DNA of 63,265 bases from positions 4,735,889 to 4,799,153 of the forward strand of contig BFEA01000017.1 in the NCBI GenBank assembly GCA_003427395.1, read 5' to 3'. A model generated the notes under the pieces. The model saw only the letters and a list, made by a program, of their open reading frames with translations. It was not told where the DNA came from and made no database searches. Below, piece by piece: positions 1-61,240 of the stretch; position 1 is the stretch's first letter, and each line of letters starts with the position of its first letter. The stretch comes from Chara braunii (Eukaryota; Plantae; Charophyceae). The position numbers and the translations under genes are program-made.

Positions 1-2876
1 TCGCTCTCTTTTGCGTGTTCTCTCTGTGGATTTGGGCTGTACTCAGCAAGCGCAGTAAGGCTGCGGAATCAGAAAAAAAAAAAAGCAGCGGATGCCTGTT
101 TACTGACTGGTCGGCACACCGCCGACCGGTTGGCCCTGATCGGTCGGGACAAAACGGTCGCGGTCGGGGTCCGGGTCGGCTGTCGGCGCCTGTGCAACCC
201 TGCAATCCACGACTCTTAGGAGTCGCAAAGCTGTTGCAACTAAACGCAACGCTGTGTAGTGGGCCGAGGCCCCAGTTGAGAAATGTACCCTACCCTCGGT
301 AGGGTAGTTTTCTCAATGGAAAATGGTTTCCCGCCCAAACCAAAAGCTTAGGGCCAAAGATACTACAAAATGGATTTCACGTCGAATAAAAAATCTACAA
401 AATGACCAAATCTAATAGGTTATTCTCCTGTGCTTCCGTATCATTAGATTCGCACTACAAAACGGANAAATCTAATAGGTTATTCTCCTGTGCTTCCGTA
501 TCATTAGATTCGCAATACATCAACCGCAGAGGTCCGTCCCACCATGCCACATGTGATAGAAAGCTCAGCGTTGAGAAAACTCAACACTGTAGGTGGGACC
601 AGACCCCTGTAGCAAATTCAACAACAAAGTTCCAAAAAAAAAGGGATCTGGAATAATAAAAAACAACAACGAAAAAAAAAAACAAAGAGAAGATCTTGCG
701 CCTCGCACAGGAAGTCATGCCCCAATACCATTATGTTCCGGGGAAGACTGTAGCAGGGGGCTAGTTTAGTTTTCAAGTATTTTTTAACATGACCACAGTC
801 ATGCCGCGAGATTTCCAGATCGCTCCTTTTTATTCTCATGGGAGGGACCTGTGCATATGTGGAAGCAAGCCTAAACCCCCATTTAATTTTGTGGGGCATG
901 AACCCCGGATGTCCACTCAGACTCCCATTGTAATCTGATAAACCACCAGTACTTATGACTTTTTCTTTGCTGTGTCTAGAAATGCCCAGGACACCAAGAA
1001 GACCAAACTGTGTGCGTTTTCTTTTCTGGCTGGCACCACCAGCCATTTAGCTCGGGTGGGCTGTGCTCTGAAAGTCACGGGGCGTGCATGGCTGTGCAGA
1101 GAAAAATGGCTGGGAAAAATACAGGTGCTTTGAACCACCAGTACGTTTCCCAGCCATTTTTCTAGGATGTGGCTGCATGCGCGCTATGTCTGGTGGGACG
1201 AAGTGGCATGCTGGTTCGTGACAGTCACATGCAGGCAACGGTTTCGCATGCAGGCCCTGTTTTACCTGGACGTACTATCTATTGGGAACCAGCATGCCGG
1301 TTAATCCCCCCTTATGTGGTGTGCATGCCGGTGTGAGGCCACTAGTCCGGTGGTGGTGAGTGAACCACCAGGATTGATCCCTCACCAGCTGGATGCTTCC
1401 TTTCTTTTTGTTTTTTTCTCTTGGCTGAAGGCTCCATCTATTGGTGGGGAGCTGCGCCTGCTGGAAACCGGGCCCAGCGTCCCAAATATTACAAGACAAT
1501 ACTGAGTTTGCTGGAAACCAGGTCCAGCGTCCCAAATATTACACTATCGTCCTGGGTGCGGTCCTTCCTACTGCTGAAGGGCCCTCTTGTTCCTGCTATA
1601 CTTGTCGCTGTGCTGCTCCTTCCTCCTCCTCTGGCTCCGTTGTTGACTTGTTGTGTTGTGTTCAGAGGACAATTAATCCGGTTACCTGATCCTAGACCCT
1701 GTATAGAGCAGGCCTTCATGTCAGACCTCTGACTCTGACCTAAATATCTGGCTGTCTTTCCTCCTCCCTCCTTCCCGCTGTGTGTTTTTGTGCGTGTTTG
1801 TCGTCCCTGGGGGGCATAGGCTCCTGCTGTTGCTGTGCTCCTGCTTCCTCGTTTCCACTTCCCCACTGGTGCAGCTCAGAGGGGACCTGGTCGTCTGATC
1901 TCAATCCCTGTATTGAGCAGCCCTCCGTGTGGCACCTCTGACTGTGTTGTGTCCAAGCACCATCGGTTGTCCTCCTTTCTCCTTGTCATCCCCCTCTCAG
2001 GTAGAGGCCACAGCATTAACTGGCCGTCCTTGTGCATGGGGCCGCTCAAGTTGTGGCAGTCTTCTGTCCTGTTCGTGGTACCTTCTTTGTCTTCATTGTC
2101 GGGGCAAACACCCTGACAAGGGTATTTGCTGGGGATTTTAAATGCCGGACACTGTCTGACTTTTTCGTTGGATTGAGGGACTTGAAGCGAATGACGTTTG
2201 CTAAACGTTCATTCAGACTTACCCACGACCGAAAAACTAAAACTTTTTTTGAACTTAAGTTCGGATGCTTGCTTCATCCGAAAAGAATCATGGCGGTAGT
2301 CGGCAGTTTTTGTGGAGGCCGCAGAGGCACACAGACATGAAAATGGTAAAGCTAGACCTATCCTAACTAAAATAATGACGCGCGGCTTTGCAGCCGTGCG
2401 ATTCAGGGCCTAGGTAGGCTAAAAAGAACGGTTGTGCCAGGTATGGGGCCGCAGCGTCGGAGGAATAGGAAGCCTATATTTTTTATTATTATTTTCTTCT
2501 TGGGCCGCAGGATTTGACTCCGCGCCGGGAGTCGCGAAGCCGGCGCCGCGGCCTGCACGGTTGGGTGGCCACTCAGGCTATCGATAGATAGCCGGCTGCA
2601 GAAAAGGGGAGGAGCAGGCAAAACCTACCTAGCCATGGGTGGGAGGCCTACTCGGCAAAACCCTTCAAATAGAAGGACTGTTGTTACAACTCTTGTAATA
2701 GGAGCTAGCTAGTAGGTATCGCATTGAACTATCACTCGACAAAGACAAGGATCGAGCCCAGGTTGAGTTAACATTGGACTAGCTCCTTTTGGAGTTGTCC
2801 TCACTTGCAGATAGCGTAGTCCATCTCGACTGTGCGATCGCAGAGATCACACGGCGGAGATAGGCCGCGCAAAACT

Positions 2877-2933
2877 GCATGGCCCCTGCGCAAGGATGAC
2901 ACGCATAAATCGGGAAATGGTCCAAATTATTTT
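2877..2933 (+). pseudogene. U6: U6 snRNA 3'-half fragment
   Basis: gcatggcccctgcgcaaggatgacacgcataaatcgggaaatggtccaaattatttt is nearly identical to the plant U6 3' half. Confidence 0.9.
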
Positions 2934-2934
2934 C

Positions 2935-3025
2935 GATCCCCGACGGGGATTGAACTCAGGTCTGCATTTCAATGATGGCGTGGGGGGGAGGTGTGTCATG
3001 ACATGACCGTTGGACAAAGCTAATG
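2935..3025 (-). pseudogene. Degenerate tRNA-like / SINE head
   Basis: Minus strand cctgagttcaatccccg (B box/T arm) with a weak A-box upstream. Confidence 0.35.
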
Positions 3026-6000: not shown

Positions 6001-9000
6001 CCGTATGAAAGGAAAAAAAAAAAAAAAGGAATCGTTTTGTTTTTTTATCTCAAATTTGGTAACGAATTTCAATATGACCTTGAGGCAAAAGTGTTTCAAT
6101 TTATTTTTCTTCAGAACGTATTTGTTTTTCAGATTTTTTTGAATTTTGTTTTTTGTTTTTTTTTTACGTACGTACGGTCCGTACTACCGTATGAGCCTGT
6201 ATGTACGTACGTACGGCCCATAATCGTATGGGGGTCTACACAACTTTGTCGGCTGCATCGATGTTATTGTCGGAAGTCAACTCCTCGTTGGTTGTTGTAT
6301 GATTTTTTTATTCATGGAGTTCGACCTGAGGTGGACGAGTTTCGTTTCGACTTTATGTCATTGGATGTACAGCATGATGATTCAAATTATTTTAGTTATT
6401 ATTTCATATTTGATATATTTCTATCGACTATGGTCGACTTCTTTTGATGTAATTATATGTGGTTGTTATAATTTTTTTTTGGCTATGTGTCCAAGGGACT
6501 AGGAGTAATTTGTGGTTTCACGCTTGGTTGAAACCGTCCTAGTCGACCGGCGTACGCTCCGTACTTAGGAGATCAGCGCCCTAAGGAACGAACGATGCTC
6601 AGGTTCGCTTGGCGTCAACTAAGCGTATCTATACTACAGTGAACGAGCAAACGCCCTCGGTTGATCTATCTCTGCGATTGCATTTAGAAACTTTCACACG
6701 TGGGTAAGTAACTCTGAGAATGTGGGTAAGTGAGACTTGGCCCCCTGCTCATGATTCCGATGTCCAGTATGCCACATTTCAGAGAAGGGACAGGGTCCCG
6801 CTAGCCAAGGGATAAGACGACATTTTAGACATGAGACAGAGGTGAAACTCACATTAGCCGCCATTGGCTATCATAATTTCTCATTAGAATAGAAATGTCA
6901 AAGTTTCTAGAAGTGGAAGGCGAGATTCTTAAACCATGAAAGAGATTGTTAGAATCTCTTCATGCACTTATTTTCCCCATTAACCACCAGTACCTTTCCT
7001 AGCTATTTTTTCAGAGCCGTGTTGGGTAACGCGCTGGCCTGAAACGGAAGGGCAGCCGCCGATAAATCGAATCGCCAGCCAGTCTTGATTTTCAGGCCGA
7101 CGAGCAGTGCCCGCAACCGACATATGGGAAAGGTACTGGTGGTTTAAAAATGGCTGTCTGACTTGTCCTTGCCCAACACGTTGTAAGACACTCCTCAGGG
7201 TGTCCTCAGGCACCGAAAAAGTTTGGTTTTTTAGAGGCGTCGGTCCACCAGGTCCTATCCTCGGGGAATGGCTCCAAGCATGAATCCTTGGGGCCTTCCC
7301 GTGGCCAGTTTTATACGTGTATAGGCGGGTGCGCAAGGTATGTCCGTGCTCTGGTTTGGCATGTCCTCTCATGTGACATGTTGGTCCACAGGCGAAGGGC
7401 GCGTCCTTCGTGGTCGCCCCGAGGACGCATAGAGTGTCGCCGATATGTTGGGGGCCGCAAAAAAAAAAGAAACGAAAAGGCGGGAATATCCCCATCCAAA
7501 ATTTGAAATTAGAATTACGGCGAGTGACGACGGTTAGGCGGCGCACAGGCTATCCCAGAGCGGCAGCGGGGCAGTGGATAGCTCGATTTCCTTGCCTTCC
7601 AATCTACGTGGGGGTGTGGTTGCCCCTTTCAGTCATGACATTGGCACGCAGTGTGTAGTGTTCTGTCGTGAGCTGGGCTCCTTCACTGACCGCACGTGGC
7701 AGCTTGGACCGCAAGCTTCAGTGGGCGAAGTCCTCCATTGTGTCATCGTCCTTCGTGGTCGCCCCGAGGACGCATAGAGTGCCGCCGACATGGCGCGTGA
7801 ACATGGGTGCTCGGGACGCATGTGCACGGCGAGGAGGCAGGGTTGCTGTTGACGGCGTCATTTCGAAGTTCGTCGACAATGGAGGGTGGTAGGGGAGTTG
7901 GGCGTGCTGTGCTGACATCCATGGAGAAGATGGCGGTGGGGGCGGCGGGGCTGGCCTTTTTCAACCACCGTCTCTTTTTTTTTTTTCTTTTTTTTTTTCA
8001 ATATGAACACCCCCCCGTGCTGCTAGAGGTGCTGATAAGAGCAGACACCCCTAGCACCCGGGGAGGGACTCCATCTATTGGTGGGGAGCGTCACCTGCTG
8101 GAAAACGGGTCCAGCGTCTCCCAGGAAGTTGGCCCAGGAAACACAAAGTTAAACACGACAACCACCAGGAGCAGCACGGCGATGAGCAGCAACAGCAGCA
8201 GCCTGCGGTGCAGGTCAGCCATAAACGACAGGGGACAGGACACTCTGCAGGCACGTTTTTTGTCGCATGTGCAGACAGCGATGACGGATGGCTGTCCAAA
8301 ACACTCCAAGGAGAGCACCGCCGCCTGAAGAGTGGCTGCCACCATGCCCTTTTTTTTTTTAACCACCAGTACTTGGCCCAGCTATCGATGCCAAGCCAGC
8401 CGAACCCCTGCACGCGAAGTTTTGCCGAACCGGCAGGGCGTCATTTCAATTTTTTTTTGGCTGGCGCTTCCAGCCATTGTGGTCCGGTACCCGAAGCCCT
8501 GCAGACACGGCGCGTTAACGGGGAAGCGCCACGGCCAATAGCTGGCCAAGTACTGGTGGTTTAATGACGGCTCCATCTATTGGTGGGGAGCATCACCTGC
8601 TGAAAAACGGGTCCAGTGTTCCTTATACAGAATGATTTGGAAAGCAGCCAGGAAAAACCCAAAAAAAAGACAGGAAAGTATCTGAAAAGCCTGCCAGCAT
8701 TGATTACTCTGGGCTCAGAGTATTAACTAATGTCAACCTTCTCCCTCCAGCTGTACTCGTCCACCCTATCTAACCTTACTTTTTTATGAAAAAACATCTA
8801 TCCAAAAAAGGTAATCTCCAACCACCGTTAACCATGTACAGCGTTCCTGTCTTTGGAGACACGAGGGAACCACTTGGGGCCACCAGCAGGACCACTCATC
8901 CCTCGCTCCTTCTCTAAACCAGCCTTCGGCCGGGGTGAGCTCAGTGTTCCTCCTAATGGCAAAAAATAGTAGATTTTGAAGAAAACTTTTAAGGCATGAG

Positions 9001-11089: not shown

Positions 11090-11309
11090 NNNNNNNNNNN
11101 NNNNNNNNNNNNNNNNNNNNNNNNNNNNNNNNNNNNNNNNNNNNAGAGGTCAGAGAGATCAGGAAAAAAAAAAAAAGAGGGGTAAGTAAGCCGGAGTCAC
11201 AAAAAGGAGTTATAATTGCACTACAGGGATGCTGGACCCTATTTCCAGCTGACACACATCACATCTTTTTTTTTTTTTTTTTTTTGGACACACATCATAT
11301 CATTGTACA

Positions 11310-11451
11310 GGGACGCTGGACCCAATTTCCAGCAGGTGCAGCTCCCCACCAATAGGTGGAGCCTTCGACGCTGGGGCCTACTTATCGGGGATGCTCTTAT
11401 CACCCCGTTAAGTAGGTTTCCCGTATACGAAGCTATAATTAAAAAAAAAAA
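11310..11451 (+). repeat. Representative full tail cassette (M3-M4-M5-polyA) of the dispersed hairpin repeat
   Basis: gggacgctggacccaatttccagc-aggtgca-gctccccaccaataggtggagc-cttcgacgctggggcctacttatcggggatgctcttatcaccccgttaagtaggtttcccgtatacgaag-A(n); M3/M4 recur about 25 times in the window. Confidence 0.9.
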
Positions 11452-16399: not shown

Positions 16400-18585
16400 T
16401 AGTACATGGCCCAGCCAAGTTGGGAATCACGGTTGTGCCAACATCACATAGGGCCCTACAGTGGCAGATTATACGCCGCTGCCTCCCCGCACCGGACTGG
16501 ATAACCACACGCACTAACCTAGAACAAACAGCCTGAGGGGTCCTATCCCCCATAATATGCTCCCACAGTGGAAATGGAGCACAGCCTAGGCGGGCTGAGC
16601 TGGAACACTGCCTACTGGCGTGCCCCATGGCAGTGCAGGCTTGGCAATGGTGGGACGCGATGTGCCATGAGCGCACGGATTCACCATTTCAATGGAATAT
16701 TGTCCTCATCCTGCTGGGAAAACAAAGAAGCTTCCCCTCCCTCCACCTGGACACCCTTTCAAGGTAACCTTTTCAAGCACATGAGGCTTGCCCTCCTCAT
16801 GGTCATCTGGAGGATGAGGTGCTCAGCAGAGCGTCAAGAAGAGGCCAGGCCCTTTGGTTTTCACCAAGCCAAGGCTTAACTTCTTGAGGTAATCAGGGCA
16901 AACATGCAGAAAGCCAGCAAAAAGTCGGTAGAGATGGTGAAAAAAAAAAAGGGAAAAGATAAAGAAGAAGTTAGTAGAAATGGTGAGTGCAGCTCCCAAC
17001 CAAGAGAGTAGGCAAAAACTAATAATTATTGCGGCCCTCACAGCAAAGAGGATAGTAGTATGGATTCCGTATGTCTGGGCCTAAGTCCTCCTCCATGCAA
17101 GCACATATTGGAACCGGCGACTTCGGCCTCAAGAGCGAAGTCTCTTAACCACTACAGCCAGGACACGGTGTTCAAAAGTGGAATCGTACCAGTCGTGATA
17201 TCCACCCCACCCCTGCAAGGCTGTAGTGTCCAACTCAACACACACCGCACACAACACCCACGGACACAGCAATTCTCGTACACTTCGCTCTGTAGTCAGC
17301 ACGTAACCCCCGCTGGTACTCTTACCCGCTCACACAGACGGGACTTATCAATGCCCGCGGTTCACGGGCGCTTCCACAGTAGTATGGATTCCGTACGTCT
17401 GGGCCTAAATCCTCCTCCGTGCAAGCACAGATTCAAACTGGCGACTTCGGCCTCAAAGAGGATAGACCCGAATCACTTTTTTTTTTTTTTTTTGGGAACA
17501 AGGCTCCAATCTATAGGTGGGGAGCAGCGCCCGAATCACAAACTGGCTGAGGTGCAGAAAGATGGAAGGCTAAGATGGAAGAACTGGGCAGCACACTGTG
17601 AGGACCACCTGTGGACATACAGACTGGCCAAGTTCTTCCCCAGACCATCCCCGGGTCAGAGGTGCACCTGGCCCCAGGAGAGTTGGATCAATGTTTAGAG
17701 GCTGGGCCCCGCCCTCTCCGCTCCCCCCGGTCACAATCCCCCCCCTCTAGTACCATCCCAGACCCCCCCACCCATCCGGTTGCCACCCCCGTCTCTCTTC
17801 CCTTAACTCCCCCNNNNNNNNNNNNNNNNNNNNNNNNNNNNNNNNNNNNNNNNNNNNNNNNNNNNNNNNNNNNNNNNNNNNNNNNNNNNNNNNNNNNNNN
17901 NNNNNNNNNNNNNNNNNNNNNNNNNNNNNNNNNNNNNNNNNNNNNNNNNNNNNNNNNNNNNNNNNNNNNNNNNNNNNNNNNNNNNNNNNNNNNNNNNNNN
18001 NNNNNNNNNNNNNNNNNNNNNNNNNNNNNNNNNNNNNNNNNNNNNNNNNNNNNNNNNNNNNNNNNNNNNNNNCTCCACCGCTACCATCCAACCCCGCACC
18101 CCCCACTCCGACACCGCCCCCACCTATCCCCAAGTTGAACTACCCATCCCACCCCTCACTGCCCCATTCCCTGCTCAGCCAGGAGTCACCCGGAGCATCC
18201 AACATCAGCAGCTCTGTAACAGACCACTAAAAAACAGCGAACTCAGAGGGACCCCGGCGACCCCGGCGACATTCACTTCAGACAGTGAAACACGGCAGCA
18301 ACGTGCCTCCTGGTACAGGAGCCCGGAGAATCACATCATGCCTGCCATGCTATAGCTGACAGGGAAGGAGAGAGCCCCTCTTGCGGAAAAATGGCACAGA
18401 CAGGACAGTAGACTATAGGGCCGAATCTGAGGGACGCTGGGCCCGGTTCTCAGCATGTTCTGTCTGGTTACTCAGGGTAGACTGTGAGGACCCCGGCCTC
18501 AATTTTCTCAACTATCAATATCAGCCTTGGGCACTGGGCCCGTTTCCTAATTGAAAAAAAAAAGAAAAAAAGGAAAAAAAAAAAA
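16400..18585 (+). mobile_element. L1/Tx1-type 3' fragment with nested insertions, C-rich 3' UTR, hairpin tail modules and poly(A)
   Basis: ALQWQII..ICSH..ELEHCLLACPMAVQAWQWW and MRLALLMVIWRMRC at about 16450-16825; apparently resumes near 17530; tail modules at 18431-18547 followed by an A-rich tract. Confidence 0.72.
17056..17453. mobile_element. ~400-bp insertion with 75-bp terminal direct repeats and 12-bp TSD
   Basis: caaagaggatag at 17044-17055 and 17454-17465; tagtatggattccgta...gacttcggcct repeated with period 324. Confidence 0.7.
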
Positions 18586-19534: not shown

Positions 19535-20558
19535 TCGTTTGTGACACAAACGTACTTGCCCCCCCCCAAAAAAAAAGGCAAGTTTCTAGGTGAGCGCTTT
19601 GTTAGTAGGAGGTAGGAGCTGTAGAAGTAGGGAGGGTGAAGGAAACAGCCCAGGCCCCATGGTGCTCCAGGATAGGGACTGGGGACTGACATGGCCACAG
19701 CCGCAGCAAACACTGTACTCATAAGATGTATCCAAGGGACGCTGGACCCGGTTTCCAGCAGGTGTCGCTCCCCACCAATAAATGGAGCAACCCGGCTGGC
19801 AAAGCCTCTATTCCGGTGGTTCTCTCTTACCACCACTGGAATAGAGGCCTTGGATAAGGGCTTTAAAATTGAGGGGAAAAAAGAAAGAAAGAGAGAATCA
19901 CGATTGAGCCTCTCAGACAAAATCGGAGGCTTGGGGCAACTGGACTGAAATGGATGGCGGCACCAGGCGTAACTACAAGGAAAACGCTGCGCTGGCATTT
20001 CAGCCAAGAAAACGCTGTGCTGGCATTTCAGCCAAGAAAATGCTGCGCTGGCATTTCAGCCAAGCTTGGCGTGCACGTACGAAAGAGGGACAAATGCACT
20101 AGTCCTTGTAGGTAGGCAAGTGAAGGCAGATGATTTCCCACGAGATCAACGTTACCCAGTGTTGTTTGATGTCAAGCACCGGTTGCACTAACTGTGGAGA
20201 AGTACTCTCATCCAGGGCTTCAAGAGGGGTCAGAAACGGCCCTTGGGACGCGCTCTTGAAGCTTCCACAGTTCCCGCCTGCAGCCGCATGTTTTTCAAAC
20301 GAGGCCGACCGGACCCTTCTTGCGGTTTGCAAATTCGAGAGTTGGCCTCCAGTCTCGGTCGACAAAATCCTCGCTGCCCTGTCGTGTAGTGTCTTTTCAG
20401 TTCCGTGAACTTCTGTCCGACAGTCAAGAATGCTCACGAGTCGAGAGTTCGTTGAGGCCGATCCGGGAGTCTGACAGCGCAAGATGCACTCTTGAATATT
20501 TTCATGTGTCTAGCGTAGTGCAGCGAGGCCCAACGTCCGTGCCATGTAGAGATACATA

Positions 20559-23128: not shown

Positions 23129-25158
23129 AAAACAACACAATAAAGATCCCCTCTGGAGGGGTTATGTTTTTTCTTTTATTTATTATTATTATTATTATTA
23201 TTTTTTTAAAACCAAAGCTCCATCTATTGGTGGGGAGCGACACCTGCTGCAATTTGTGAGGATATGGTTGTATCTATGAGGGGTTATGTTATTACATTCT
23301 ACGTAAACGTAATGTACAGTCTAGAGATTCCACTTTCGATCTATTATATGTGTAATATATGTATAGAGTCTAATATACATAATATATAATCAGACCAAGA
23401 TAGATTTCTGATAAATAGCAAAGAACACCCAGACCAAGAGCAGTTATATATTCTTTTTTCACTTCTTCTTTTTTTCTTCTTTTTCCCCCATACCAACAGT
23501 AGTGATCAAACCATTTGAAAACTTTGGCCCTTTATGGTGGCAGCTTGATTTAGAAATTTAAAGGCCTACAACCGCGTCAACTGGTTGTTTGTCCTTGCTA
23601 CGCTGGAGCACATGAACTTCGGGGAGCATTTCCGACCGTCTATTGCAGCGATGTATTGCTCCTCAACAGCTTCCGTCCTTGTCTCACTCAATGGAAGTAG
23701 AACACAGGATTTCCAACTGTCAGGATCCCTACCTCAGGGATGTCCAATGGCGCCGCTGCTGTTTGTAATCCCTATGGAAGTGCTCTCTTGAACTCTCTCA
23801 GGGCTGCTTCGCTGGTGAAGGGACGGCAACTGAGGGAGGGAGAAGAAGTACTCAGTACTTACCGGAGCTATCGCTGATGATCTGCTACTGGTCACACTGT
23901 CAGAGGCAACAGTGGAATCAACAGGGGTGGCCAAGGGAATAGTGGACCAATATGCAGCGCTATCAGAGGCCAAAGTAAATTGTGAAAAATCATCATATTT
24001 CCTGCCCGGCCCGGCTGAATATGAGTTGCCAGATGATTGGAGAATGAAACGTATTAGAGAGGCGGACTCGGAGAGGTACTTGGGGGTGCAAATCTCACGG
24101 TCTAGCAGCTGCCCAGTACAAGATGCCATCTTAGTAGTAGGGAGGACTGAGGCGTCCATCCATAAGACTTAGTGTAAAGCGGCAACGGGTCTGTCTTTCA
24201 AGTTGTTGGGCAGAGCCACAGTAATCACAGCGGCGGTATTTTTTTTTTTTTTGGTATTTTCCTTACTGTGGCGTATTGCCGCGGTTTTCTTGATCTCCTG
24301 GACCAAACCTACGCGACAGAAGGTGAAGCACATGGCATCCAGATACCTCTGGAAGCCAAGGGCAGAGGACCAGAAGGGCTTCATCACCAAGGTGGCATGG
24401 GACAAAGTGGTGAGCCCTGGGGACCAAGGGGGCCTGGGGATTATTAACCCAGAGAGACAAAACGTGGCGCTGCTGGGGAAATGGGTAATAAAGGTAGCAA
24501 CTCAAGCAGAGCAACGAAGCTGGCTGGAGATCGTCCAATACATCCTTTAACAAGATTTCCATCTCCGAGTCGGCTCAACAGAAGAGGTGACTGTCTGGAC
24601 CTGTTTGCAATTGACCAGTTTAAATTTATAAACCGACGCCCAAAGTCGGAAATTGGGCGGGCATCATGATGGTGGATTGTGTGCAGAAAGCTAAGACCAC
24701 AAGAGAGTCCAGCCCCGCGGCTCAAAGAGGAAATCCTGATCCAGATGCTCTTCGGCAACCCAAAGACTCTGCAGGGGGAGGGCTCTAGCTTCTTGGCAGC
24801 AGCAACACCAAGAGGAAGCTTTGGGAGGAGATGGATGGAAAAAGGGGTGACGCAAACCAGGGACATCCGGTAGGAGGAGAGGAAGGTCTGGAAGTCGGAG
24901 AGAGAACTTTGAGAGCAGTTGGGCAGACTGAGAGGAGTAGGGGAGAAGCTCCGGAGGCTAATTGAAGCCAGCCCCCAAGCCTGGCAGGAGACATCAAGGG
25001 ATGAGAACAGACTGGTACTAATTGGAGCTTGGTACAAGGACATGTACGCCCCCGGGTCACGGGTACAATTCTACCAAGTGGAGGCATGTGCGGATGAAGG
25101 GGGCTGGGAGGCCTCGCGGAGGGTCTAGAGTCAGGCACAGGAACCAAAGGGAAAGTTA

Positions 25159-27285: not shown

Positions 27286-29561
27286 CCTGTAGGGATCTCA
27301 GACTGATGAGTGTTGAGTGTTTATGTGTGGGTTGTGTGTTGAGTAAGGTCCGATGATCTGTAGGTCATACCTTGTGTACTCACTATTGGGTAGATTGATA
27401 GGTGGGAGGGGGGATGGTTAGATAGGACTTTGTGTAGGGTCTGTGGGCCTGTCTGAGTGTGCCGCCTCGTTCGTATGGGCCGCTCTGTGTAAGAGACTGA
27501 GCGTGTCTGGGTACCATGGTTGTTTCCCGGCCTCATGGTCCACCCACGAGAGTTCACACCTACATTGTACGATCCTACGTCCCAGGTAGACCCCGCTCTC
27601 TCCACACACCCTTGAGTAGTGGTAGTGGTTGGGTGTTAGGCATGTACGGTTGCCACGGGCGGGCTTCAGGTTGATCTCACGGTGCTTGTGGGCTGGGGTT
27701 CATCTGGGTTGGTACCTGTCTGAGTTCCCATTGAGGGTTCGGTTGGGGCGTGAGTCTGGGAAGGGTCCCTAGGTAAGGGTGTCATCTTAGGCAGGGGAGG
27801 GAGGGTTGTCGCATTGAATGTAGAAGGGTGGCTCGCTACCCATAGAGTCTGCATGATGTGATACAGGTGCACCTAGTAGCCTGTATCCGGGTCGTCCTCG
27901 AGGATTCGGGGTGTCCCTATGGTAGCACCCGGGGTGTCTGTGGCTCCTCGCAAGGTGCTGGTTGGTGTAGGTCTAGGTCTAGATAGAGGGGTCGGGTCGC
28001 ACCACTACAGGGCTTGACTTGCAATAAGTTAGTCACGAATGATGCCACCTGGAGGAAAAAAAAGCCTGTCCCTGGGGTCGACACAAGCCATCTGATCCCC
28101 TCACTGGTTGAGTACGACGACAGGCACCTCCCGAGGCCTAGCATCCACCCTCTACTACAAACATGAAAAAAAAAAAAAAAAGCCAACAACAACAACAACA
28201 CAGATTTCAAACAGCCATCATATGTCCATCCATATACCACCTGCGCAAATACTGAAAGCACATTATTCTGTGCCTAACAAAGCAGCAAGAGAATCGCTGC
28301 AGATGCACAAGGACGAGTACAGTTATATATTGTCAGAGTCTTTGGATTTCGACATTCGCAATTGAAATCTAGAGAGAGCACAGATCTTCGCCCCAAAAGA
28401 ACAAAGAGGAAATGGAGGCAGGCCTGATGATGTCGTCTTCCCCTGAATAGAAGGCATGCTCATTATTGCTGTTCTCGGAATACGTTTCTGAGCCCGGTTC
28501 TCAGCACAAAAAAAAAAAGGAGATACGTTTCTATTTCTGGGGGGCCGCACATGCTGCGAACCGGGCCCAGCGTCCCTTTTAATAAATAGGGCCGGGGTCC
28601 TCACAGTCTGCCCGGAAGAGAAACAGTATCGAGGGCATTACTCGTCTGAGCTTCAGATCTTAAGACTGTGAACAGACCTCTCAGTAGTAGACTGATAGAC
28701 AGTAGAGGTAAGAGATACGTTTCAGGCGAGAGCCTGGCTGTATTATTCTGGGAAGAGAATGTGGTGCTCCCGTAGTCCCGTGAACATAAGGTACCCCGAT
28801 ACTGAATGTATATAAGCCATATTCCAGGTCAGGTGCAGCCAAAACGAGGGTGCATTGTGGTGAAGACCGTGGCCTTTGCCATGGCTGTGCTGAAGTCAAC
28901 ATGAACCCAGCCACAGGTGGCTACCACGTTCATGTTTGGCTGAGGGCTGCATTTTTTTAATTTTTTCTTAACCACCACTACCTTTTCCCATGTGGGCGGA
29001 GGCCCATATGCCGGAAAAATCCGTTTGACTGTCTGGAAAAAAAAAAAAACAAAAAAAAAAACACTGCTTCCAATGAGATTTATCAACGGTGGCCGTCCAG
29101 CCTCCCATGTTTTTGGGGTAGGCTACTTTCCTGTACTCCCAACAGCCGGAAAGTGAACCCCTCTGACGCGAGTGAATACAGGCCCCCGAGGTGCACCCAT
29201 TCATCCACCAAGTGAAGTCCTAAAAACACCGTAGGTACTGGTGGTTTACGGCCAGGCTCCACTACACAGTGCTTTACATAAACAAAAACAAAAAGAAACA
29301 ATACCCTACATGCATTGGCTTCCTGGCCACAGTTCATTCAGAATGTTGGACTCGTTCGAATGCACCTGGTCCTGAAAGCATCCACATACATGTACTAGAG
29401 TTATGCGTGGTGGAACCAGGCAGCTGGTACTGCTAGTTGTGGCCATACGAGCATCCACCACTAGTAGTCCGCCTGTTGACTCCAATCTATTGGTTGGGAG
29501 AGCAGCACTTGCTGGAAATAGGGTCTAGCGTCCCTTTTCTTTTTCTTTTTCTTTCTTTCTT

Positions 29562-29604
<43 letters not shown>

Positions 29605-32462: not shown

Positions 32463-35400
32463 TTTTCTTTTCTTTAACTTCGTGTACGGGAAGCCTACTT
32501 AACGAGGTGATAAGAGCATCCTCATCAAGTGCCCCCTGCAGCGAAGGCTCCATCTATTGGTGGGGAGCAACACCTGCTGGAAATCGGGTCCAGTGTCCCT
32601 GTACAATTATGTGAATGTATCTGCTGGGAATCGGGTCCAGCGTCCTTATGCAGAATTGTGTTGATGGCTCCACCTACCTAGTGTATGCACGTTTTAGACA
32701 ATATATGTGAGATGATGGGAGAACCCTATCCATCTGATCTACCGTATCTCCAAAACAAACTGGGACATCGAGATCGATCTAATAAATCAGACGAAACCCT
32801 AACGTTGATGTAATGTGTATGACGTATTGAGCTGCAACTCAAAGCCAGCTTCCGTATACGATGATGAGTTGAGATGTCAAAGAGAACCTATCTATCAGAC
32901 GAGGGGGGGAATCCCACACGTTAGTGTGATGTGTGTGATGTGTGTAAGCTGGGAATCATAACCAGCTTCATTCATTTATGCAATGATAAGATATCAAAGA
33001 AGAAATACACTCCATCCTATATATATACTTACCTAACCTGTTTCTTAAAGAAGAACGGAGGCATTGATTACTCCCCTACAAAAAGGAAGGATTGACCTCC
33101 TGTTCATGAAGTATTATTCCTAATAGAGAGTTGTTAATTTCTGACTTCCCATACTTCTCAATTGACTCTGTATATGTTTTGTATATGGGACGCTGGACCC
33201 GCTTTCCAGCAGGTGATGCTCCCCACCAATAGATGGAGCCTCCCCCTGGGGTGCTAGTGGTGACGGCTCGTACCAGCAGCACTAGCACTGGCAGGGGTTG
33301 TTTAAAAAAAAAAAAAAAGATCGCCCTTCTGCTGCCAAAATTATCGTTGTCCACCCCCAGCAAGCAATCTTCAAACCCGCCAATAGCAGATCGAGCTGGC
33401 GAAGCCCTGACCTATCTCCCCCCCGATTGAAGTTGTAGAAAGCAACTCCAATTAGCAATCCATCCGAGCTCAACAAGGGGGAGAGCAGCAAACCAACTCC
33501 CACCCTATGCCACCCAAAGAAAAGGAGATGGACACAGAGTACACCATCAGTTTGTAATTATTGAGCAGAGGTATTGATCCTTGGATCCTGAATAAGAACA
33601 ACAATCAATGAAGAGGATCACCATGGATACAGTTCAAGTTTGCTTCCTAGTCGCCCTTCTGCTGACTACAAGCATATAGCGCTCCCACCACTAACGGTGG
33701 CACTCACACTGCCTCCGCAGTGCCGGTGCCTGTAGATGCTAGCTCACAAGTGGGGGACAGAGAGAGTGTTTTCCAGAAGAGGTTTGATCCAACAGACAAA
33801 CCTTAATCACGGCAGTTCTGAGAATGATGTGAAGTACTGATATGACTACTCATTGACTAACACTGTCAGATAATCCGGCCTACGGTACGGCCTGTCCTGA
33901 AGATGAGGGCAGATGCACTACCATAAATTCACTCATAAGCCAGACCCTCTGACCCAAGGCTTGAAGGAGTCAATCCAACAACGAGAGGGATGACCGGGCT
34001 ATAAGACTTGCACCTAAATACTGCCAACATCTAACTAATCAAGAGCTGCTACCTGTTATGGCACCCATCCTCGTACAAATCCTACAGGAGCAGTAGCAGA
34101 AGCTTCATGAATTTGGCCTTACTTACCGGAAACAAATAGCAAACAGTAGCGGAAGCTCAACAGGTCACAACTAAAGTTAAAAACTATCCTTGGAATTACA
34201 GTTCCATACAGATAGAGGGTCACAGCAAGAAGCGCCGAGTCAAATTCCACGGAGAGATCAAACATATGCATCAGAACGGAGGGAACAATTGATGCGGTCG
34301 GAGTTAAACTAGTCATGACTCATGAGCGCATTGAAGAAAATAATCCTGAAAGTATTACAAAAAGGAACTTCAAAAGGGCATAAATCTAACCCCAGTAATG
34401 GCTGGATGCAGTAAGTCAAAATCAACGACGACAAAGATTCTATCCTATTCCTTAGCTCTGCGAAAATGAACAGGTAGGAACGGCCAACAGGTTTTTTTTT
34501 TTTTTTTTTTTTTTGGAAAAACTTGGGAGAACGAATTTTTAGAATCAACAACTGGAAAAACCTGCCAATATTGACTGCCCTGGACTCGGGAGCTGGTTGT
34601 GGAGGCTCTTTTAACTGTAATCCACCTGTAATCACCAAACCAGCTGTCCATAATCTGCAGGCTCCATGGGCCTGGAAACAACGGCCAACAGGTATCATGG
34701 CCGAGTACAGAGCTTTCCAGCCGGACGTGGAAGCAAGTGGATCTAAGCTATTACTGTGTCTGGTTTCATACACTTAAATTCTTGCTCTTCATGACCTGTC
34801 CTGCCCTTGCTCGTATCAGCAGCAGTCCCACCGCTATTGCAAGCTCTCACACTGCTTCCGCAAGCTCTCACACTGCTTCCGCAAGTGCTGCCTTAACTGC
34901 TGGCATGCTCAAGTACTCTGTCACAACGGTGTGAAAGGATAGCAGAGAATGGAACACTCATCCATGCGTTACTCACCGATGGAAGCGCCATCATGATGAT
35001 GACGAGAGTGCAACCCACAACTAAATAGCATGAAAACCTTGGTCATGCTGTTTGCGCCCCAGTGAAAGATTAGGTCGTCATCCTCGTACTGGGAGAAGCG
35101 CCGTCAGGACACGAACGGGATTAGCGCTAACATGAGCACTAATTTGCGGCCACCGTTCTCATTCCCTTTTGTAGCTCATCAATGATTTTGGATACTATGG
35201 ATACAATAATTTGTGGTTAGGACGTTCGACCCGCTTTCCAACAGGTGCAGCTCCCCACCAATAGATTGGGAGCCATCAAACAGTGCAGACTCAAACCCAC
35301 CAGACACTCCTACAGCCTGACGGGTAGTTGTCTGTCAAAAAAAAAAAAAAAAAAAAAAAAAAANAAAAAAAAAAAAAAAAAAAAAATAATAATAATAATA

Positions 35401-38268: not shown

Positions 38269-38330
38269 AACCAAAAAAAAAAAAAAAAAAAAAAGTTGTG
38301 CCCGTCCCAAAATATTATATATATATATAT

Positions 38331-51940: not shown

Positions 51941-52380
51941 TTTTTTTTTTCGTTTGTTTGAGTTAAGGCCCTTTTTGCAAGACCTCTATCCTGGTGGTGG
52001 TAAGAGAACCACCGGGATTGAGGCTTTGCCTAGCGGGCCGCTCCATCTATTGGTGGGGAGCAACACCTGCTGGAAACCGGGTCCAGTGTCCCATAAATAC
52101 ATCTTGCTGCACAGTAGCATAATGAGAGTGGCGCCCAGGTGCTGGAAACCGGGTCCAGCGTCCCATATCCCTTCTATTCTTTCATACCTAGCCTGCAGCA
52201 GGGTTGGGTGTTGGGGGGGGGACCACCGGGGGGCACCAGTGGAGTCTCCCTCCATCCCCTAGCCTCTGCTATCCACCAGCTATCCTTTTGGCGCCCATTG
52301 TACTTTACCATAGTCTGTGTTTGAAGGCCGATGCTCCAGAAAACAGGCTGTAATAATATCTGCCAAGATCGGCCAAAGTC
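51941..52380 (-). mobile_element. Second copy of the poly(A) retro-element family seen at 55834-56677
   Basis: Reverse complement aligns by eye with 56322-56650 over about 340 bp, plus ggccgatcttggca matching 55877; poly(T) at 51941-51950. Confidence 0.85.
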
Positions 52381-54482: not shown

Positions 54483-54529
<47 letters not shown>

Positions 54530-55833
54530 CCAATCTATTCGTGGGGAGCAACACGTGCTGGGAACCGGGCCCAGCGTCCCAGTTGAGAAAATATCAGAAA
54601 ACTTATGCAAAAACAGATTGAGGTACCGGGGCCATTACCCGGCTTTGGCTGAGACTCTTACAATTTAGAAAAGCTATAAGAACTGTGCCCGCCATTTTTT
54701 GAACCCCTTCTCGATACCAAGACTCTTCAAGGCCTCACACCCCCAACTGCTGGATTACGAGGTAGCACGACCTGCCTCAGAAAACTCCCATCTGTTAGGC
54801 TACTGGGTGGAACGACCCACCCCGGCTCCGACCAGCATTGTCTTCATAGGCAATTCCCTGGACCTCTTACCAGGCCTCCAGAGCCCTCGTCACACTCGAG
54901 TTACAGGGCAGCACAACCAAACCCGCAGCTCCGACCAGCATCGTTCCAGCTCGGCCATCCGAAACCAAAGGAGCGAAAGGCAGATAGCACAGCATCGACC
55001 GAACCCCCAAGCATCACCTCAACCCAGGTTTCAGATTTGCTGGCACTGGACTCTCACAGAAATTTCGTAAACAAGGACTTAACCTAGATTAGAATGTCAA
55101 ACAAGGACTTAACCCAGATTAGAATGTCACAGCAAAACAAGGTGGGATTATCCCCCCAAAATCCCCCTCTGTCCTATTTGACCCGACTCTGCCTGGACCT
55201 ACCACGCCGCAGCGCAGCCATACCATATTCTCATCCAGCTGGCTAGCCCCTTCACCAACTGGATGCGTTATGCCCACCCATGCAGCCTCACCCACCCTGG
55301 CTCTAGATCATAGATTCCGAAGTCATACAGAATATCTACCACAAACAAGGGTGTGTATTATCAGAATCATTGAGACTAAAAGACAATCGAATTCAAGAAT
55401 TCCAGTTTGAGTTTACAATTTATGATCTCAAATATACGATGAATTCAGAAAAGGAAAATTAATTCGGATTTTGAATCTTCAACATCAAGAAGCTACTCTG
55501 AAAGTTATATTTCGATTTTATTTACAGAACAAAATCGGGCAAAACAAAAGGTAGATTGCTAATCAGGATATATTTTTGCATCTTCAGATACTGGAATTAA
55601 AAGTTGCTGATTACGACTACTCCGACGAAAGTTAGCTGGAAGTTGAAATTCCAGCATCAGAATACGTCAGCGTCAGAAAAAATCCAGATCATGTTTTATG
55701 ACAAGAAAATAAGCACTCACTGGGGACTAAAAAAAAAAAAAAAAAAAAAAAAAAGGGATTTTTTGGGCTTGTAAGACTCGAGAGTAGTGAGGCCCGAATC
55801 TAGATACTTGGAACGTTAGATCCATGCCCTGAG

Positions 55834-56677
55834 AGAGGCTCTCGTCAGTCTTCTCAGTTTTCTATTACAGTAATTAGGCCGATCTTGGCAAGATCCTAAG
55901 ATAACCTGTTCGATACTGCAGCCCCCCAGTGCCCCCCCCAACTCCCGACCCCGCTGCCGATTAGAGTACATATGGANGCTGATTCAGGTTTCCAGCGCAT
56001 TGGCGCCTTTCCTATTTTTTTTTTTGGTGCAGAAAGATGTATTCATGGGACGCTGGACCCGCTCCCCACCAATAGATGGAGCGGCCCGAAAAAAAAGGGA
56101 CGCTATGAGGACAGCAGGTGGAGCACAGGACCCAGGGGAGGGGTACTGTTTTGTACAGAGGTAGTCTTGGGACGCTGGGCCCGGTTCCCAGCAGATGAGG
56201 CCTCCCACACCATTCTCAGGAATACTCAGTACTCTTCAGTATTCTTCTGTATCTCCGTATCTCTCCTAAGGATTTCAGCTAATTTCAGCCTATTTCACGG
56301 CAGCCTGGTTTTCTATTGCTTCTATGGGCGCCATGAGGATAGTGGGTGGATGGCAGAGGCTAGGGGATGGAGAGGGACTCCACCGGTGCCCCCCGGTGGC
56401 CCCCCCCCCAATACCCGACCCTGCTGCAGTTTAGATATGGAAGAGTAGAATGGAGATGGGACACTGGACCCGGTTTCCAGCACCATGGCGTCACTCTCAT
56501 TGATGTACAGTGTGGCAAAGATATATTTTTTGGGGACGCTGGACCGTGTTGCTCCCCACCAATAGATGGAGCGGCCCGCTAGGCAAAGCCTCAATTCCGG
56601 TGGTTCTCTTACCACCACCAGGATAGTGGTCTTGCACAAGGGCCTTTCAATAAAAAAAAAAAAAAAAAAAAAAAAAA
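55834..56677 (+). mobile_element. Non-coding poly(A) retro-insertion (SINE-like or LINE 3' UTR) with 16-bp TSD
   Basis: Flanked by agatccatgccctgag at 55818-55833 and 56678-56693; ends in poly(A); contains four GGGACRCTGG modules; a homologous inverted copy lies at about 51941-52380. Confidence 0.88.
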
Positions 56678-57340
56678 AGATCCATGCCCTGAGGTAGATT
56701 TGCAGACTCAGCCTGGAATAATGCTCATACCGTAAGGCAGCAACCCCCGGCATTCCTAGTACCCGGAGAGGCACTGCACGGGGTAAGACTCGTAGGAGCA
56801 GTAGTAGCACAGCGTAAGTGCATCTGTGAGACCACGTTGCGAGAGTGTAGTATCATTCGGGTGGCACCGTGGCACTGCATGTAGTGATTCGGGCGGTATC
56901 TTACCCGGCAGTCAGGTCATGCTGCTGCTCCATCCAGGGGGGGGAAGTTAGGCCGAGTGTCGGAAGAGCGCTGGAGGTGGAGGGCTAAGAAGAAGACCTC
57001 CTTGGATATGGACTCCGAGGAGAAGTAGACTATAGACTATGAGTAGTAGGACTCGGACCTGGCTATGGTAGTTCGAACTCCACTGGAAAGGAGATTAGAA
57101 AAATACTAGAATTCCTAAATACCTAGGGGCCATTCAGTTCGAAGATGATATCTCAAGGCCCCTACGGGCAGGTCGATCACGTGTAGGCAGTTCGAAGAAC
57201 AAAGAAAAAGAAGATTTCATTTTCGCCTCCTTTCCTCGAAAAAATAAGATTTCATTTTTTATTTTATTATTATTATTATTATTTTTAGATTTCATTTTCG
57301 CCTTTCCTGGAAAAAAAGAAGTTGTTGTTGTTGTTGTTGT

Positions 57341-58260
57341 TTTTTTTTTTTTTTTTTTTNNNNNNNNNNNNNNNNNNNNNNNNNNNNNNNNNNNNNNNNN
57401 NNNNNNNNNNNNNNNNNNNNNCGTGCTGGGAACTGGGCCCAACGTCCCTTATAGCAAAATAAATAATTTGAGGCCTGGGTCCTCACAGTCTGCCCGGGTT
57501 ACCTTGTCCAAAATAAAGCAGGAGGGTAAAGGAGACAGCAATAAAAAGTACCAATTGTGGAGGGGAAGCATAGTGAATGAAGTAGGTGACCATACGTGGC
57601 CCTCTCAGCTCTCGTGATGCTGTCGGATTAGACTGTGTTTCAAGGCCTGATGGATAGATGATCTCATAGAAGTTCTGAGTAAATCAATCTGTTGTCGTCG
57701 ACCAAGTCTGCCCAAGGGAAAGGGGAGGCCCATTTCTTGCCAAATTGTGTGGAGGCCACCTCCATTGATGAAAGGGTGACAAGTCCTTAAGTCTATGCCA
57801 GTCTGCTGTAATATCCAATCGCATAGTATGCTTAAGTTGGACAATAAGAGAAGGAAGGGAATCAACTGTAGCAAAGAATCTCCTGTCTCTTCTGGCTATC
57901 CATATTTGCCAGAAAACTCTCGTTCTGAAGAAATTGCTTAATTTCCCTGCCTGTTGCTTATGAAAACAGGGTTGTATTCTGCCTGTGAAGGCTAGGTCCT
58001 GGTTCCAGAAGTCTTTCACCTTGTATGCCTCCAGCCAGAGCTTGTTGAGGAAGTCCTAGAGGCTAGAACACTCTAGCAATGACACATTCCCACCAGAGGT
58101 GTAGCCCATCCTCTAGGTAGGGGTCACGACATGCCTCGCAGAGCACAGATACATCCATTCCTTTTTCTGAGCACCACAGGGCAGTGGGACCACAAGGGTG
58201 CAGGTGTAACCATTGTAATCCCCCAATCTTAACTTCTATGGTTGAAAGCGGGAGATGGAT
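57341..58260 (-). mobile_element. L1/Tx1-type 3' fragment: zinc knuckle, 3' UTR, hairpin tail modules and poly(A)
   Basis: Minus strand LCEACRDPYLEDGLHLWWEC (CxxC-x8-H-x4-C) and FWQIWIARRDRRF; then modules at 57471-57498 and 57425-57448, an N gap, and poly(T) on + at 57341-57359. Confidence 0.85.
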
Positions 58261-59474
58261 AAAGAAGGGGAGCCATTTGCGGGAATGACAATCTTAACTT
58301 CATTGGAAGATCTCATTTTCGCCATTTAGTTGGCTCTTTTTTTTACCAGGATTTAAGGCGAAAATGAAATCGTCGAACTGAATGATATCTCAAGGCCACT
58401 ACGGGCAGTTCAAAGAAAAAGAAGAGCCAACTCCTGGCTTTTATAAAGACACTGTTTGGTTTCCAAAAAAAAAAAAAAAAGCACCAACTACGTCGGTAGC
58501 CAAAATGAGTTCCGAGTGGGTAAAGAAAACACGTACGGGCAGGTCGATCACGTGCCGAGTTCGAAAAGGAAATGATTGAAAAGAGGGGTGCGGCAGTCAC
58601 TTTCCAATAAGCGCGGATGTCATAACCACAGGGGCGGGTGGGCAGTGGTGTGCAGAGGCCCCGTTCGCAATTTAATTTACGAAAAAAATACGGCTTTTAT
58701 ATTTGCTTTGTCTGCGCATTCCAAACTGCTGCCGCGACCAAACTGCATCATGGTGTTCTTTTTTTCCTAATATTCGAAGCTGAAATCTTGACTCAGACTT
58801 AGTTGCTTCGAAAACCAGATGCTATCATAATGATGTTTCCTGTCCACATCTTATGTATTCACATAGGAACCCATGACATTAATTTCATGAATTCACTACA
58901 CAATTGTGGAAAGGTGAGAAAATTTTGGCCGAGGCTGCGGAGCAGTGTGGGTGTGTAATGGGGCCCAACCTTTTCGGGTCAACTAGGCTTCGGAACATGA
59001 TCATATCGGACAACTGGGACTTCTTTTCCTCAAAGAAGAAGACTTAGTGTGGGGAGCAACAGTGTGGTCCCTAACCATCTCAACCAACACGTCAAAGATT
59101 TCACCGAAATGACATTTTCTGCAGTTGATTGCTCTTGACGGAACAGGGAGGTTCACAGCCAACCAGAGATTATCTCATTACAATGATTCTATATTGGCAG
59201 TGATTCTTGTGAGGTTGAATTTCATCCTTGTGATGAATGCTTTCTCCCTCTCTCTCCCTCTCTCCCTCTCTCGCTCTCTCCCCCCCCCTCCCCCCCCTCT
59301 CTTCCCTCCCTTTTCTCTCTCGCACCCACATACACACACACAATCTCCTGACGAGTTGGTGAAAGTCCGAAGAAACAGTCAGACTTGCTTTTCTTTGTGG
59401 AATCGTGCATAGAAAATATGACAACACACACTTGCTCACTCATGCACTCCTTCACCCAATAAAAGTGATAGGTG

Positions 59475-59546
<72 letters not shown>

Positions 59547-60504
59547 AAAACGGGCTCTAGCTGATAGGTGTCTTGATCTTCTTCATTCCATCAATGAAAA
59601 TGCATGACTTTACTGACAGTGTGTGTAATCATCATGTATGGTAATTATGGCGATGCCACATTGATGCCTATTACTACATCTTTGGTAATAAGCCACCCCT
59701 TCCTTTATTCTGGGGTCTGCTCCTGCACAAAATGGGGTCAGCCTACGGACCCCGCTAACGCTCTGAAGTGACTCAGCAGGTCTCGCTGCGTCACCAAGTC
59801 AGGGATGGATGGCAAAGGCAACTTACCTAAGACAGAAGGGATGGATGGCAAAGGCGACTTACCTAAGACAGAAGACTCCAGCAAGAAAGCACTGAGCCCC
59901 TGCTCTAGGTCCAAAAAAACTTGACGAGCCCTGAGGCTCTGCGCCGGGCCACAAAATCACAAAAAAAAACAGAAGACTCCACCAGCAAGAAAGCATCGAC
60001 CTATTCTCCCATACGTCCGAAAAAACTTGGCGAGCCCTCCGAGTCAGCCCACAAAATCACACAAAATTAATTACACAAACACGACAGCATTGGCACTGGT
60101 ATTCATTCCAAACGACGACTCACTCACGTCACCACTGTCTCTATCACTCCATGGCTAGACATCCTCCATTTCACTTTGCTATCTAGCTCTGGACTGTATA
60201 GAGTGCCATAATCCCAAACTCCACAAGCTCTTCACGCGACACCAGCTGGAGCACTACTGCTTAAAACACCCTAGAAGCCCCCATTTCTTCCATGTGCTCC
60301 GAAAAAGCAGCCCATGGGAATGACACCCACAGAAACACTCTCTCAGCCTCCTCACGATAATACTGTGGCAAAAAACTCCAAACGTACATTCCCTCCCACC
60401 AAGAAAACTGTGGCCACCCACAGACATTCCTTGTCGAAAAGACAGCCCATGCTCTAAAGCAAAGCAAAGAATTAGGCCGTGTGTGTCTTGGGTGTGTGTG
60501 TGTC

Positions 60505-60575
<71 letters not shown>

Positions 60576-61240
60576 CAGAGTACTCCATGACTAGCATCTC
60601 GAAGCGAAGTACGGAAACCGTATTGCAATCCAGCTCCGAAGTAATTCATCGGCACACCCACATTAACCTTATCAGGCGAGCACAGGACTTCTCAAGCCAG
60701 TCAACCCTTATGTGGGATCCTACAGACGAAGCATGGTCAGCACCTTTTTTCGCGGGAGTGTGTTCTGATGGCCAAGAGGTGCGTCTTTTCGGAGGATGAA
60801 CAAAATTCACATACATCACAAATCGAGGAGGAATAGATACTTCGACTTATTCTAGTTCGGACAGACGATGCACGGGGAAAACTCAGGCGACTGTCAGTGA
60901 TGACGACGAATCGACACAGCATGCCGAGGGCAGCGAAGGCAGGGAAATATTCAAAAGTATAATCATGTGCTAATAGTGTCATCGAGCATCACAAATGCAT
61001 GGTTATAGTAAATATGGCCGCACATCCAGGTAGACGAGGGCATGCCAAGGTGATATGCATTACGATCGGGTGCATGCCATATTATGGTCGCCCACGTCTA
61101 AGCAGGGGTGCTTTTTTTTTTTTTTTTTTTGAAACGGGCCCAGTTCCCAAGGCTGATGTTACCAATAAGAGGATTGAGGCCGGGGTCCTCACAGTCTACC
61201 CGGAGTGACCGAACCAAACTTGCTGAGAACTAGGCTCAGC

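Follow-up and report, generated by a model that had tools for sequence, protein, structure and literature searches.

What kind of signal is carried by a short hairpin motif that recurs, amid unrelated sequence, in Chara braunii, a streptophyte alga close to land plants? The question is raised by a 63,265-nucleotide (nt) stretch of this genome (assembly GCA_003427395.1, contig BFEA01000017.1, positions 4,735,889 to 4,799,153 of the forward strand), referred to here as the window, the internal numbering of which is used below. A first-pass annotation, made from the letters alone, had described two hairpin motifs, M3 and M4, together with two others, M1 and M2, and had read them as an exchangeable signal for mobilisation or 3′-end formation, shared by different L1/Tx1 families of long interspersed nuclear elements (LINEs) and their parasites. 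The observation is confirmed and the interpretation partly supported. M1 to M4, with a further hairpin, M5, form the structured 3′ tail of the L1-type LINEs of C. braunii and of their non-coding carriers, and comparison of the copies points to a role as a template tag for target-primed reverse transcription (TPRT) alongside poly(A), a reading to which we would give a probability of about 0.6.

Modules and their copies in the window

Searches for M3 and M4 with up to three mismatches gave 18 and 13 matches, respectively, in the window and none in 100 shuffles of it. The canonical unit consists of M3, a 7-nt linker and M4, 53 nt in total, and a covariance model of this unit, run unfiltered on both strands, gave 26 matches at E < 0.01, where none would be expected by chance. 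Eleven are complete, the others being M3 alone or the linker with M4 alone, and with several matches falling inside one element they represent about 21 separate insertions. The initial count of about 25 copies, on both strands, is thus borne out and all of the places then listed were recovered, although that at 61131 is only a 3′-truncated M3-like piece directly before the poly(A). M2, with four matches and two looser copies (29809 and 53301), and M1, with two or three, are rarer than M3 and M4. Both are real, and the modules are mixed in varying order and number as had been claimed, for example as M3-M2-M3′ at 18431 and 61222, M2-M3 at 28553 and 57425 and M1...M3-M4 at 54527. Nearly all of the copies point towards a poly(A) or A-rich tract within 0–90 nt, much as had been described: a run of at least seven A is found 0–89 nt downstream in 14 of the 16 tails tested, and the remaining two have A-rich tracts. 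Assembly gaps interrupt none of the modules and adjoin just two of the tails: at 10953–10981 the poly(A) that follows enters the gap at 11090–11144, and the gap at 57360–57421 stands between the M3 at 57425 and its poly(A).

Within a tail, unrelated upstream sequence is followed by an optional extra M3 and then by M3, the linker, M4, M5, a spacer of 5–30 nt and the poly(A). M5 is a long terminal hairpin, the stem of which differs among families while the apical loop (roughly CTCTTAY) is kept, and most of the tails that bear it fold well in ViennaRNA (z −3.3 to −4.4). In five copies M5 is absent and the poly(A) begins 0–13 nt past M4. A second type of tail is built on M2, which may have M1 ahead of it or occur together with M3.

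Target-primed insertion, mostly with 5′ truncation, gave rise to the copies. A 15-nt target-site duplication brackets an 844-nt non-coding, internally dimeric element (55835–56678) and one of 11 nt brackets a 111-nt truncated copy (23168–23278). The former carries the modules, so that the earlier mention of parasites stands to this extent. As to short interspersed nuclear elements (SINEs), no tRNA and no Rfam match to 7SL or 5S was found in the window, and a SINE head for the non-coding copies was rejected for this reason. They could be LINE tails that have undergone truncation or internal deletion.

The 50 nt on each side of the complete units are only 0.52 (upstream) and 0.56 (downstream) identical, against a random value of 0.50 and 0.87 for the units themselves, and flanks of 1.5 kb were compared by blastn. 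The module is therefore a conserved island between unalignable flanks, in agreement with the original description of the flanks as unrelated. Inside the unit, non-consensus bases concentrate at positions 16, 30 and 31 (heterogeneity p < 5e-5), and most of the others hardly vary, unpaired ones among them, for example the AC that follows GGG and, in the loop of M4, AATAGAT.

Folding of the modules

Taking the window together with the other lineages described below, the M3 hairpin stays paired through two-sided changes at five of its six pairs. In the window its closing pair occurs both as A-U and as G-C, G-U being the intermediate, and changes are also seen at two further pairs. Over the lineages the stem occurs as GCTGGA/TCCAGC, GCTGGG/CCCAGC, GCTGAG/CTCAGC, GCCGGA/TCCGGC (locus L024) and ACCGGG/CCCGGT (locus L026), so that in distant lineages it may differ at up to three pairs with pairing retained; the variants quoted in the first-pass annotation are all present. 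The M4 hairpin shows G-U and two-sided changes, with a CCCC/GGGG variant in locus L020. Both hairpins, M3 and M4, are established.

In addition to what had been noted before, the loop of each hairpin is complementary to bases 5′ of it, GGG with the loop CCC (PK1) and GGTG of the linker with the loop CACC (PK2). The resulting four-helix structure has a covariation score above all 500 shuffles and all slid controls (36 and 30 aligned copies), while the competing nested fold, preferred by ViennaRNA for some tails, scores exactly at the shuffle mean. From the alignments PK1 would have a stem 1 of 3 base pairs (bp), a loop 1 of 2 nt, a stem 2 of 6 bp and a loop 3 of 4 nt, and PK2 a stem 1 of 4 bp, a loop 1 of 2 nt, a stem 2 of 5 bp and a loop 3 of 7 nt. 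The loop lengths of both predicted knots are in the classical H-type range and are sterically plausible. Compensated changes in PK2 number three (CGTG/CACG at 54527, a U-A pair at 28527 and CTG/CAG in L020). The 5′ GGGAC always accompanies a lone M3, and the linker a lone M4, which fits units of the size of a knot. Two tandem H-type pseudoknots are a plausible model for the M3-M4 unit, if a less secure one than the two hairpins. For M2, a classical pseudoknot with the full 5-bp stem was rejected since it leaves no loop 3, and this module may form two alternative hairpins or an M3-like knot. A triple helix of the ENE (element for nuclear expression) kind was also rejected, the folds showing no U-rich internal loop.

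A compact and possibly pseudoknotted RNA could also be catalytic, and ribozymes do occur in non-long-terminal-repeat elements, twister variants being an example (PMC8501958). Nonetheless, the cassette matches no Rfam family, ribozymes included, even with E up to 10 on the cassette-rich stretch, and in the window only U2 and U6 reach the gathering score; this also agrees with the earlier view that the motif is not a described one. The module lies at the 3′ end and not at the 5′ end, the delimited truncated copy begins about 31 nt upstream of the module and not at its edge, and the retrocopies retain intact modules. A self-cleaving ribozyme, or other catalytic RNA that processes the transcript, would therefore seem extremely unlikely.

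Tails shared among distant L1 lineages

Only one copy in the window reaches coding sequence, a weak zf-RVT remnant (58066–58293) upstream of M2-M3, and Pfam, run on ten open stretches that precede cassettes in the window, gave nothing beyond this; most copies are too truncated to reach open reading frame 2 (ORF2). Ten L1 ORF2 loci were taken from the C. braunii assembly through a protein search seeded with an open reading frame from locus L016 (see below). Eight of the ten have M2-, M3- or M4-type modules in the sense orientation, 250–1000 nt downstream of ORF2 and before the poly(A) (Table 1), and in the other two, L018 and L022, no tail was seen within the stretch covered downstream of ORF2. 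A long L1 ORF2 precedes the tail in L017, L023 and L026. The ORF2 proteins contain Pfam RVT_1 and zf-RVT, with the apurinic endonuclease (APE) domain (Exo_endo_phos) in some, and the elements end in poly(A). To judge from these sequence features (APE, reverse transcriptase, C-terminal zf-RVT and poly(A) end) the hosts are L1-clade LINEs; only this L1-type layout was seen, where the first-pass annotation had also named Tx1. The same 3′ tail is found in the autonomous elements L017, L023 and L026 and in the non-coding 844-nt element.

Between L017 and L023, the identity of the ORF2 proteins is 25% over 706 residues and that of the modules about 89%, with the remaining 3′ untranslated regions (UTRs) unalignable. 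As the first-pass annotation had proposed, near-identical modules therefore end different L1 lineages and do not belong to one recent SINE. In a tree of the ten ORF2 sequences the full tail occurs in both major groups, with L017 placed among the M2-tailed lineages (split support 84/91). Within this ten-sequence sample, the distribution suggests that tails have been exchanged between lineages; differential loss of modules from a multi-module ancestor would be another way to arrive at it.

The relationship between tails and ORF2s bears on whether the conservation might be passive, with all copies deriving from one recently active tail and the structure being functionless. Many copies are near the consensus and the G-C stem variant may be a single inherited event that is counted repeatedly, both of which would suit this explanation. 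Instead of a single SINE with collinear flanks and no covariation, what was found were flanks at random identity on both sides and stems that covary. Moreover, the host ORF2s are only 25–45% identical to one another, substitutions are scarce at most unpaired positions and in paired ones alike, and the stems of distant lineages remain paired despite their differences. Passive conservation is accordingly improbable.

The unit is patchily distributed, with 26 matches (E < 0.01) in the window, 20 in the 47.5-kb L026 (clustered at 20000–46000) and none in L018 to L022, though the 53-nt model does not cover M2-type tails. Nests of tails could be explained by insertion into the A/T-rich tails of earlier copies. 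Viral contigs held no exact M4, and in a metagenome scan 14 of 16 loci were chance matches within unrelated conserved sequence. The other two, L006 and L016, carry the real tail; both are from GCA_003427375.1, in the accession series of the Chara project, so that the evidence for the module is confined to Chara. A word-based protein search returned the query itself as its sole match.

Table 1. Module-bearing copies in the window, with the tails found at the L1 ORF2 loci
Location	Strand	Feature	Support
1431..1533	-	Extra M3, complete unit (M3 stem includes G-U), no M5, A-rich tail 13 nt past M4	80.5 and 28.3 bits
7975..8120	-	Complete unit, M5, poly(A)	79.8 bits; fold z -4.36
8570..8622	-	Complete unit with decayed M3	77.6 bits
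10953..11089	+	Linker and M4 without M3, M5, poly(A) running into gap	nhmmer E 1.9e-7
11226..11451	+	Extra M3, complete unit (11310-11362), M5, poly(A)	81.0 bits; fold z -4.31
17503..17531	-	Linker and M4 alone, poly(A) 9 nt downstream	22.1 bits
18431..18585	+	M3, M2, truncated M3-like piece, poly(A)	
19736..19880	+	Complete unit, M5, A-rich tail	83.2 bits; tail fold z -3.65
23168..23278	-	111-nt 5′-truncated copy (linker and M4, A-rich tail) within 11-nt target-site duplications	
28482..28518	+	M3 variant with GCTGAG/CTCAGC stem, then poly(A)	
28527..28615	-	M2, M3, decayed M4 of CAGA-loop subtype	
29479..29534	-	Decayed complete unit	50.1 bits
29809..29848	-	M1 then M2 variant, poly(A) ~55 nt downstream	
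30002..30025	-	M3 alone	24.3 bits
32547..32646	-	Extra M3 (32623-32646), then complete unit (32547-32599)	83.5 and 24.0 bits
33187..33239	+	Complete 53-nt unit (M3, 7-nt linker, M4)	Best model match, 85.3 bits
33240..33318	+	M5 terminal hairpin, conserved apical loop, short spacer, poly(A)	Fold, sequence
35219..35363	+	Unit with insertions, M5, poly(A); 81.6% over 103 nt to first cassette of L017	60.3 bits
52040..52164	-	Extra M3 (52141-52164), then complete unit (52040-52092)	83.8 and 31.4 bits
53301..53316	-	M2 variant core, poly(A) ~45 nt downstream	
54485..54642	-	M1 (54626-54642), unit with GCTGGG/CCCAGC stem and compensated CGTG/CACG, poly(A) directly 3′ of M4	67.4 bits, alignment
55835..56678	+	844-nt non-coding dimeric element, five module matches, M5, poly(A), 15-nt target-site duplications	
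57340..58293	-	Remnant of the C-terminal part of L1 ORF2 (zf-RVT), 3′ UTR, M2, M3, assembly gap, poly(A)	Sub-threshold Pfam zf-RVT, E 0.00097
61112..61240	-	M3 variant (GCTGAG/CTCAGC), M2, truncated M3-like piece, poly(A)	
L017		Two full M3-M4-M5 cassettes, one truncated, poly(A), downstream of ORF2	
L019		M2 downstream of ORF2	
L020		Diverged M4 downstream of ORF2	
L021		M1-like and M2 downstream of ORF2	
L023		M3-M4-M5 and A-rich tail downstream of ORF2	
L024		M3 only, covaried stem, downstream of ORF2	
L026		M3 only, covaried stem, then poly(A), downstream of ORF2	
L027		M2 downstream of ORF2	

At 29564–29684 on the minus strand M3 breaks off after its initial 11 bases and more than 110 A come next, in two runs with one N between them, which reflects either a deletion or polyadenylation within the module. 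A short A/U-rich motif, ATAATGA, separates the poly(A) from the module nearest to it in L027 (11470–11500), L021 (17310–17330), L019 (42610–42625) and L026 (9660–9680), and is a candidate near-upstream element for polyadenylation. GC-rich, hairpin-like repeated units are present upstream of M2 in the 3′ UTRs of the M2-tailed L1s L021 (16880–17010) and L019 (42240–42330). L020 contains an L1 that seems intact, with an ORF2 of 1388 residues, and directly past its poly(A) (8740–8955) lies sequence like the 5′ part of 18S rRNA and then a gap; this could be an insertion of ribosomal DNA or a retrocopy of the rRNA.

Elsewhere in the window, copies like U6 small nuclear RNA (snRNA), one full-length and one 5′-truncated, lie on the plus strand at 22889–23001 and 2875–2931 (61.4 and 44.2 bits), with long A-rich runs about 100 nt past the truncated one. 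At about 32423–32524 (+) a 5′ fragment of U2, which at 44.1 bits narrowly misses the cut-off, directly adjoins the minus-strand tail at 32547 on its A-rich side, as though the tail had inserted into a U2 copy or formed a chimera with one. Two exons of an aquaporin (major intrinsic protein) gene, at 37657–37998 and 39150–39644 on the plus strand (Pfam MIP, E 5e-27 and 3e-35), show that this retroposon-rich window is genic.

Role of the tail and comparison with known 3′ tails

If the tail is a template tag, its RNA would fold into two tandem H-type pseudoknots and then a long hairpin, and the ORF2 protein, or a partner in its ribonucleoprotein, would read this fold together with the poly(A). Such reading would select and position the template for TPRT, in what may be called a 'stringent plus poly(A)' mode. 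Duplicated modules occur within a tail, and modules also appear to have been swapped from one lineage to another, for which template switching is a plausible route. This reading would fit the proposal of Ohshima, based on one monocot lineage and one Chlamydomonas pair, that the ancestral L1 of green plants required both a tail and poly(A) (PMC3472496).

Several results weigh against a template tag of this kind. One tail is common to ORF2s that are only 25% identical, and as known stringent LINEs pair each ORF2 with its own tail, this sharing is unexpected under direct recognition by ORF2. Several retroposed copies are without M5 and some hold only M3, M4 or M2, so that no one module is indispensable. 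A U2 snRNA retrocopy in the intron of the aquaporin gene (38167–38294, 108.8 bits), truncated after about 107 nt and continuing directly into 22 A, has no module, suggesting that some of the L1 machinery in Chara accepts other RNAs. As to the fold, GGG/CCC of PK1 never varies, even where the intervening stem is rewritten, which shows a constraint but not pairing, and the three compensated cells of PK2 are set against about six uncompensated ones in dead copies. The linkage of ORF2 and tail in L023 is a distance of about 930 nt with no intervening poly(A) and not a delimited element.

The modules might instead serve the RNA itself, through binding of a host factor or of ORF1p for stability, nuclear export, translation or packaging, or through 3′-end formation. 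We regard this as unlikely, yet as a serious rival. The presence of a near-identical module beside such dissimilar ORF2s would be easier to understand with a common host factor or a conserved partner, the module-free U2 retrocopy indicates that the module is not strictly needed for reverse transcription, and, with the poly(A) so close to M4 in the five copies that lack M5, it is relevant that the conserved M4 loop AATAGAT resembles the near-upstream elements of plants in being rich in A and U. A parallel exists in the tobamoviruses, where tandem pseudoknots ahead of the 3′ end recruit host factors. On the other hand, tails with only M2 or only M3 have an A/U-rich stretch of their own before the poly(A), so in those tails the module does not act as the poly(A) signal. 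If the modules acted in stability or export, it would be hard to see why exactly this part is retained in 5′-truncated non-coding copies, although retention of the 3′ end is expected either way, and the folds are without the U-rich internal loop of ENE triple helices.

Returning to the tail as a template tag, a more speculative extension, which we hold only tentatively, is that Chara keeps a dual recognition of specific tail and poly(A) in the form of a kit of pseudoknot-like modules exchanged among distant L1 lineages, one RNA 'passport' for which the reader would be either a conserved surface of ORF2 or a shared partner. If this were true, recognition would not be by lineage-specific cognate pairs. 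The origin of green-lineage L1s as stringent elements, later relaxed to poly(A) only, is an open proposal (PMC3472496) for which Chara offers a directly testable case, most of the L1 lineages examined ending in conserved structured modules and poly(A). With a size of 24–53 nt, and reused by very different reverse transcriptases, the modules are candidates for a minimal L1-type template tag.

While a literature search found no paper on the tails of Chara LINEs, several known 3′ tails invite comparison. A stringent L1 lineage with a covarying hairpin in its tail has been described in monocots (maize LINE1-1_ZM with ZmSINE2/3; Ohshima, 2012), and in Chlamydomonas L1-1_CR shares a stringent tail with SINEX-3_CR (PMC3472496). 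The Chara tails are like these in belonging to L1-clade elements that end in poly(A), in having a conserved 3′ stretch of about 45–80 nt amid diverged sequence, with a compensated hairpin and a conserved loop, and in being common to non-autonomous elements (PMC3472496). In contrast to the single-hairpin tails of maize and Chlamydomonas, and comparing by description only, the Chara tail is made up of several short modules (M1–M5) that are duplicated and recombined, two of them possibly pseudoknots, and is common to very distant ORF2 lineages. Stringent LINEs have a 3′ stem-loop that is bound and read by the ORF2 protein (PMC4176376). In the L2-clade elements UnaL2 of eel and ZfL2 of zebrafish the loop is conserved and the stem free to vary, which is the exact pattern of M5 in Chara, but these elements end in short repeats, have only a cognate tail for each ORF2 and have no tandem pseudoknot-like units (PMC4176376). 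An avian R2 protein binds a pseudoknotted element of the 3′ UTR to start TPRT, and with the Chara tail this element has in common its small size, its place close to the 3′ end, the A-rich single strand behind it and a pseudoknotted fold, which in Chara is a predicted one (PMC12222951). Unlike the Chara elements, R2 is site-specific, with a single open reading frame and a restriction-like endonuclease, and its element has neither sequence similarity to the Chara tail nor modular repetition. The upstream pseudoknot domain of the tobamovirus 3′ UTR consists, like the predicted fold in Chara, of consecutive small H-type pseudoknots, with stems of 3–6 bp, just ahead of the terminal structure. That RNA is copied from its 3′ end by an RNA-dependent RNA polymerase, ends in a tRNA-like structure and not in poly(A), and is not homologous to the tail in Chara. 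Set beside these systems, the tail in Chara most likely belongs to a known class of signals, that of the stringent tails, in a form not described before.

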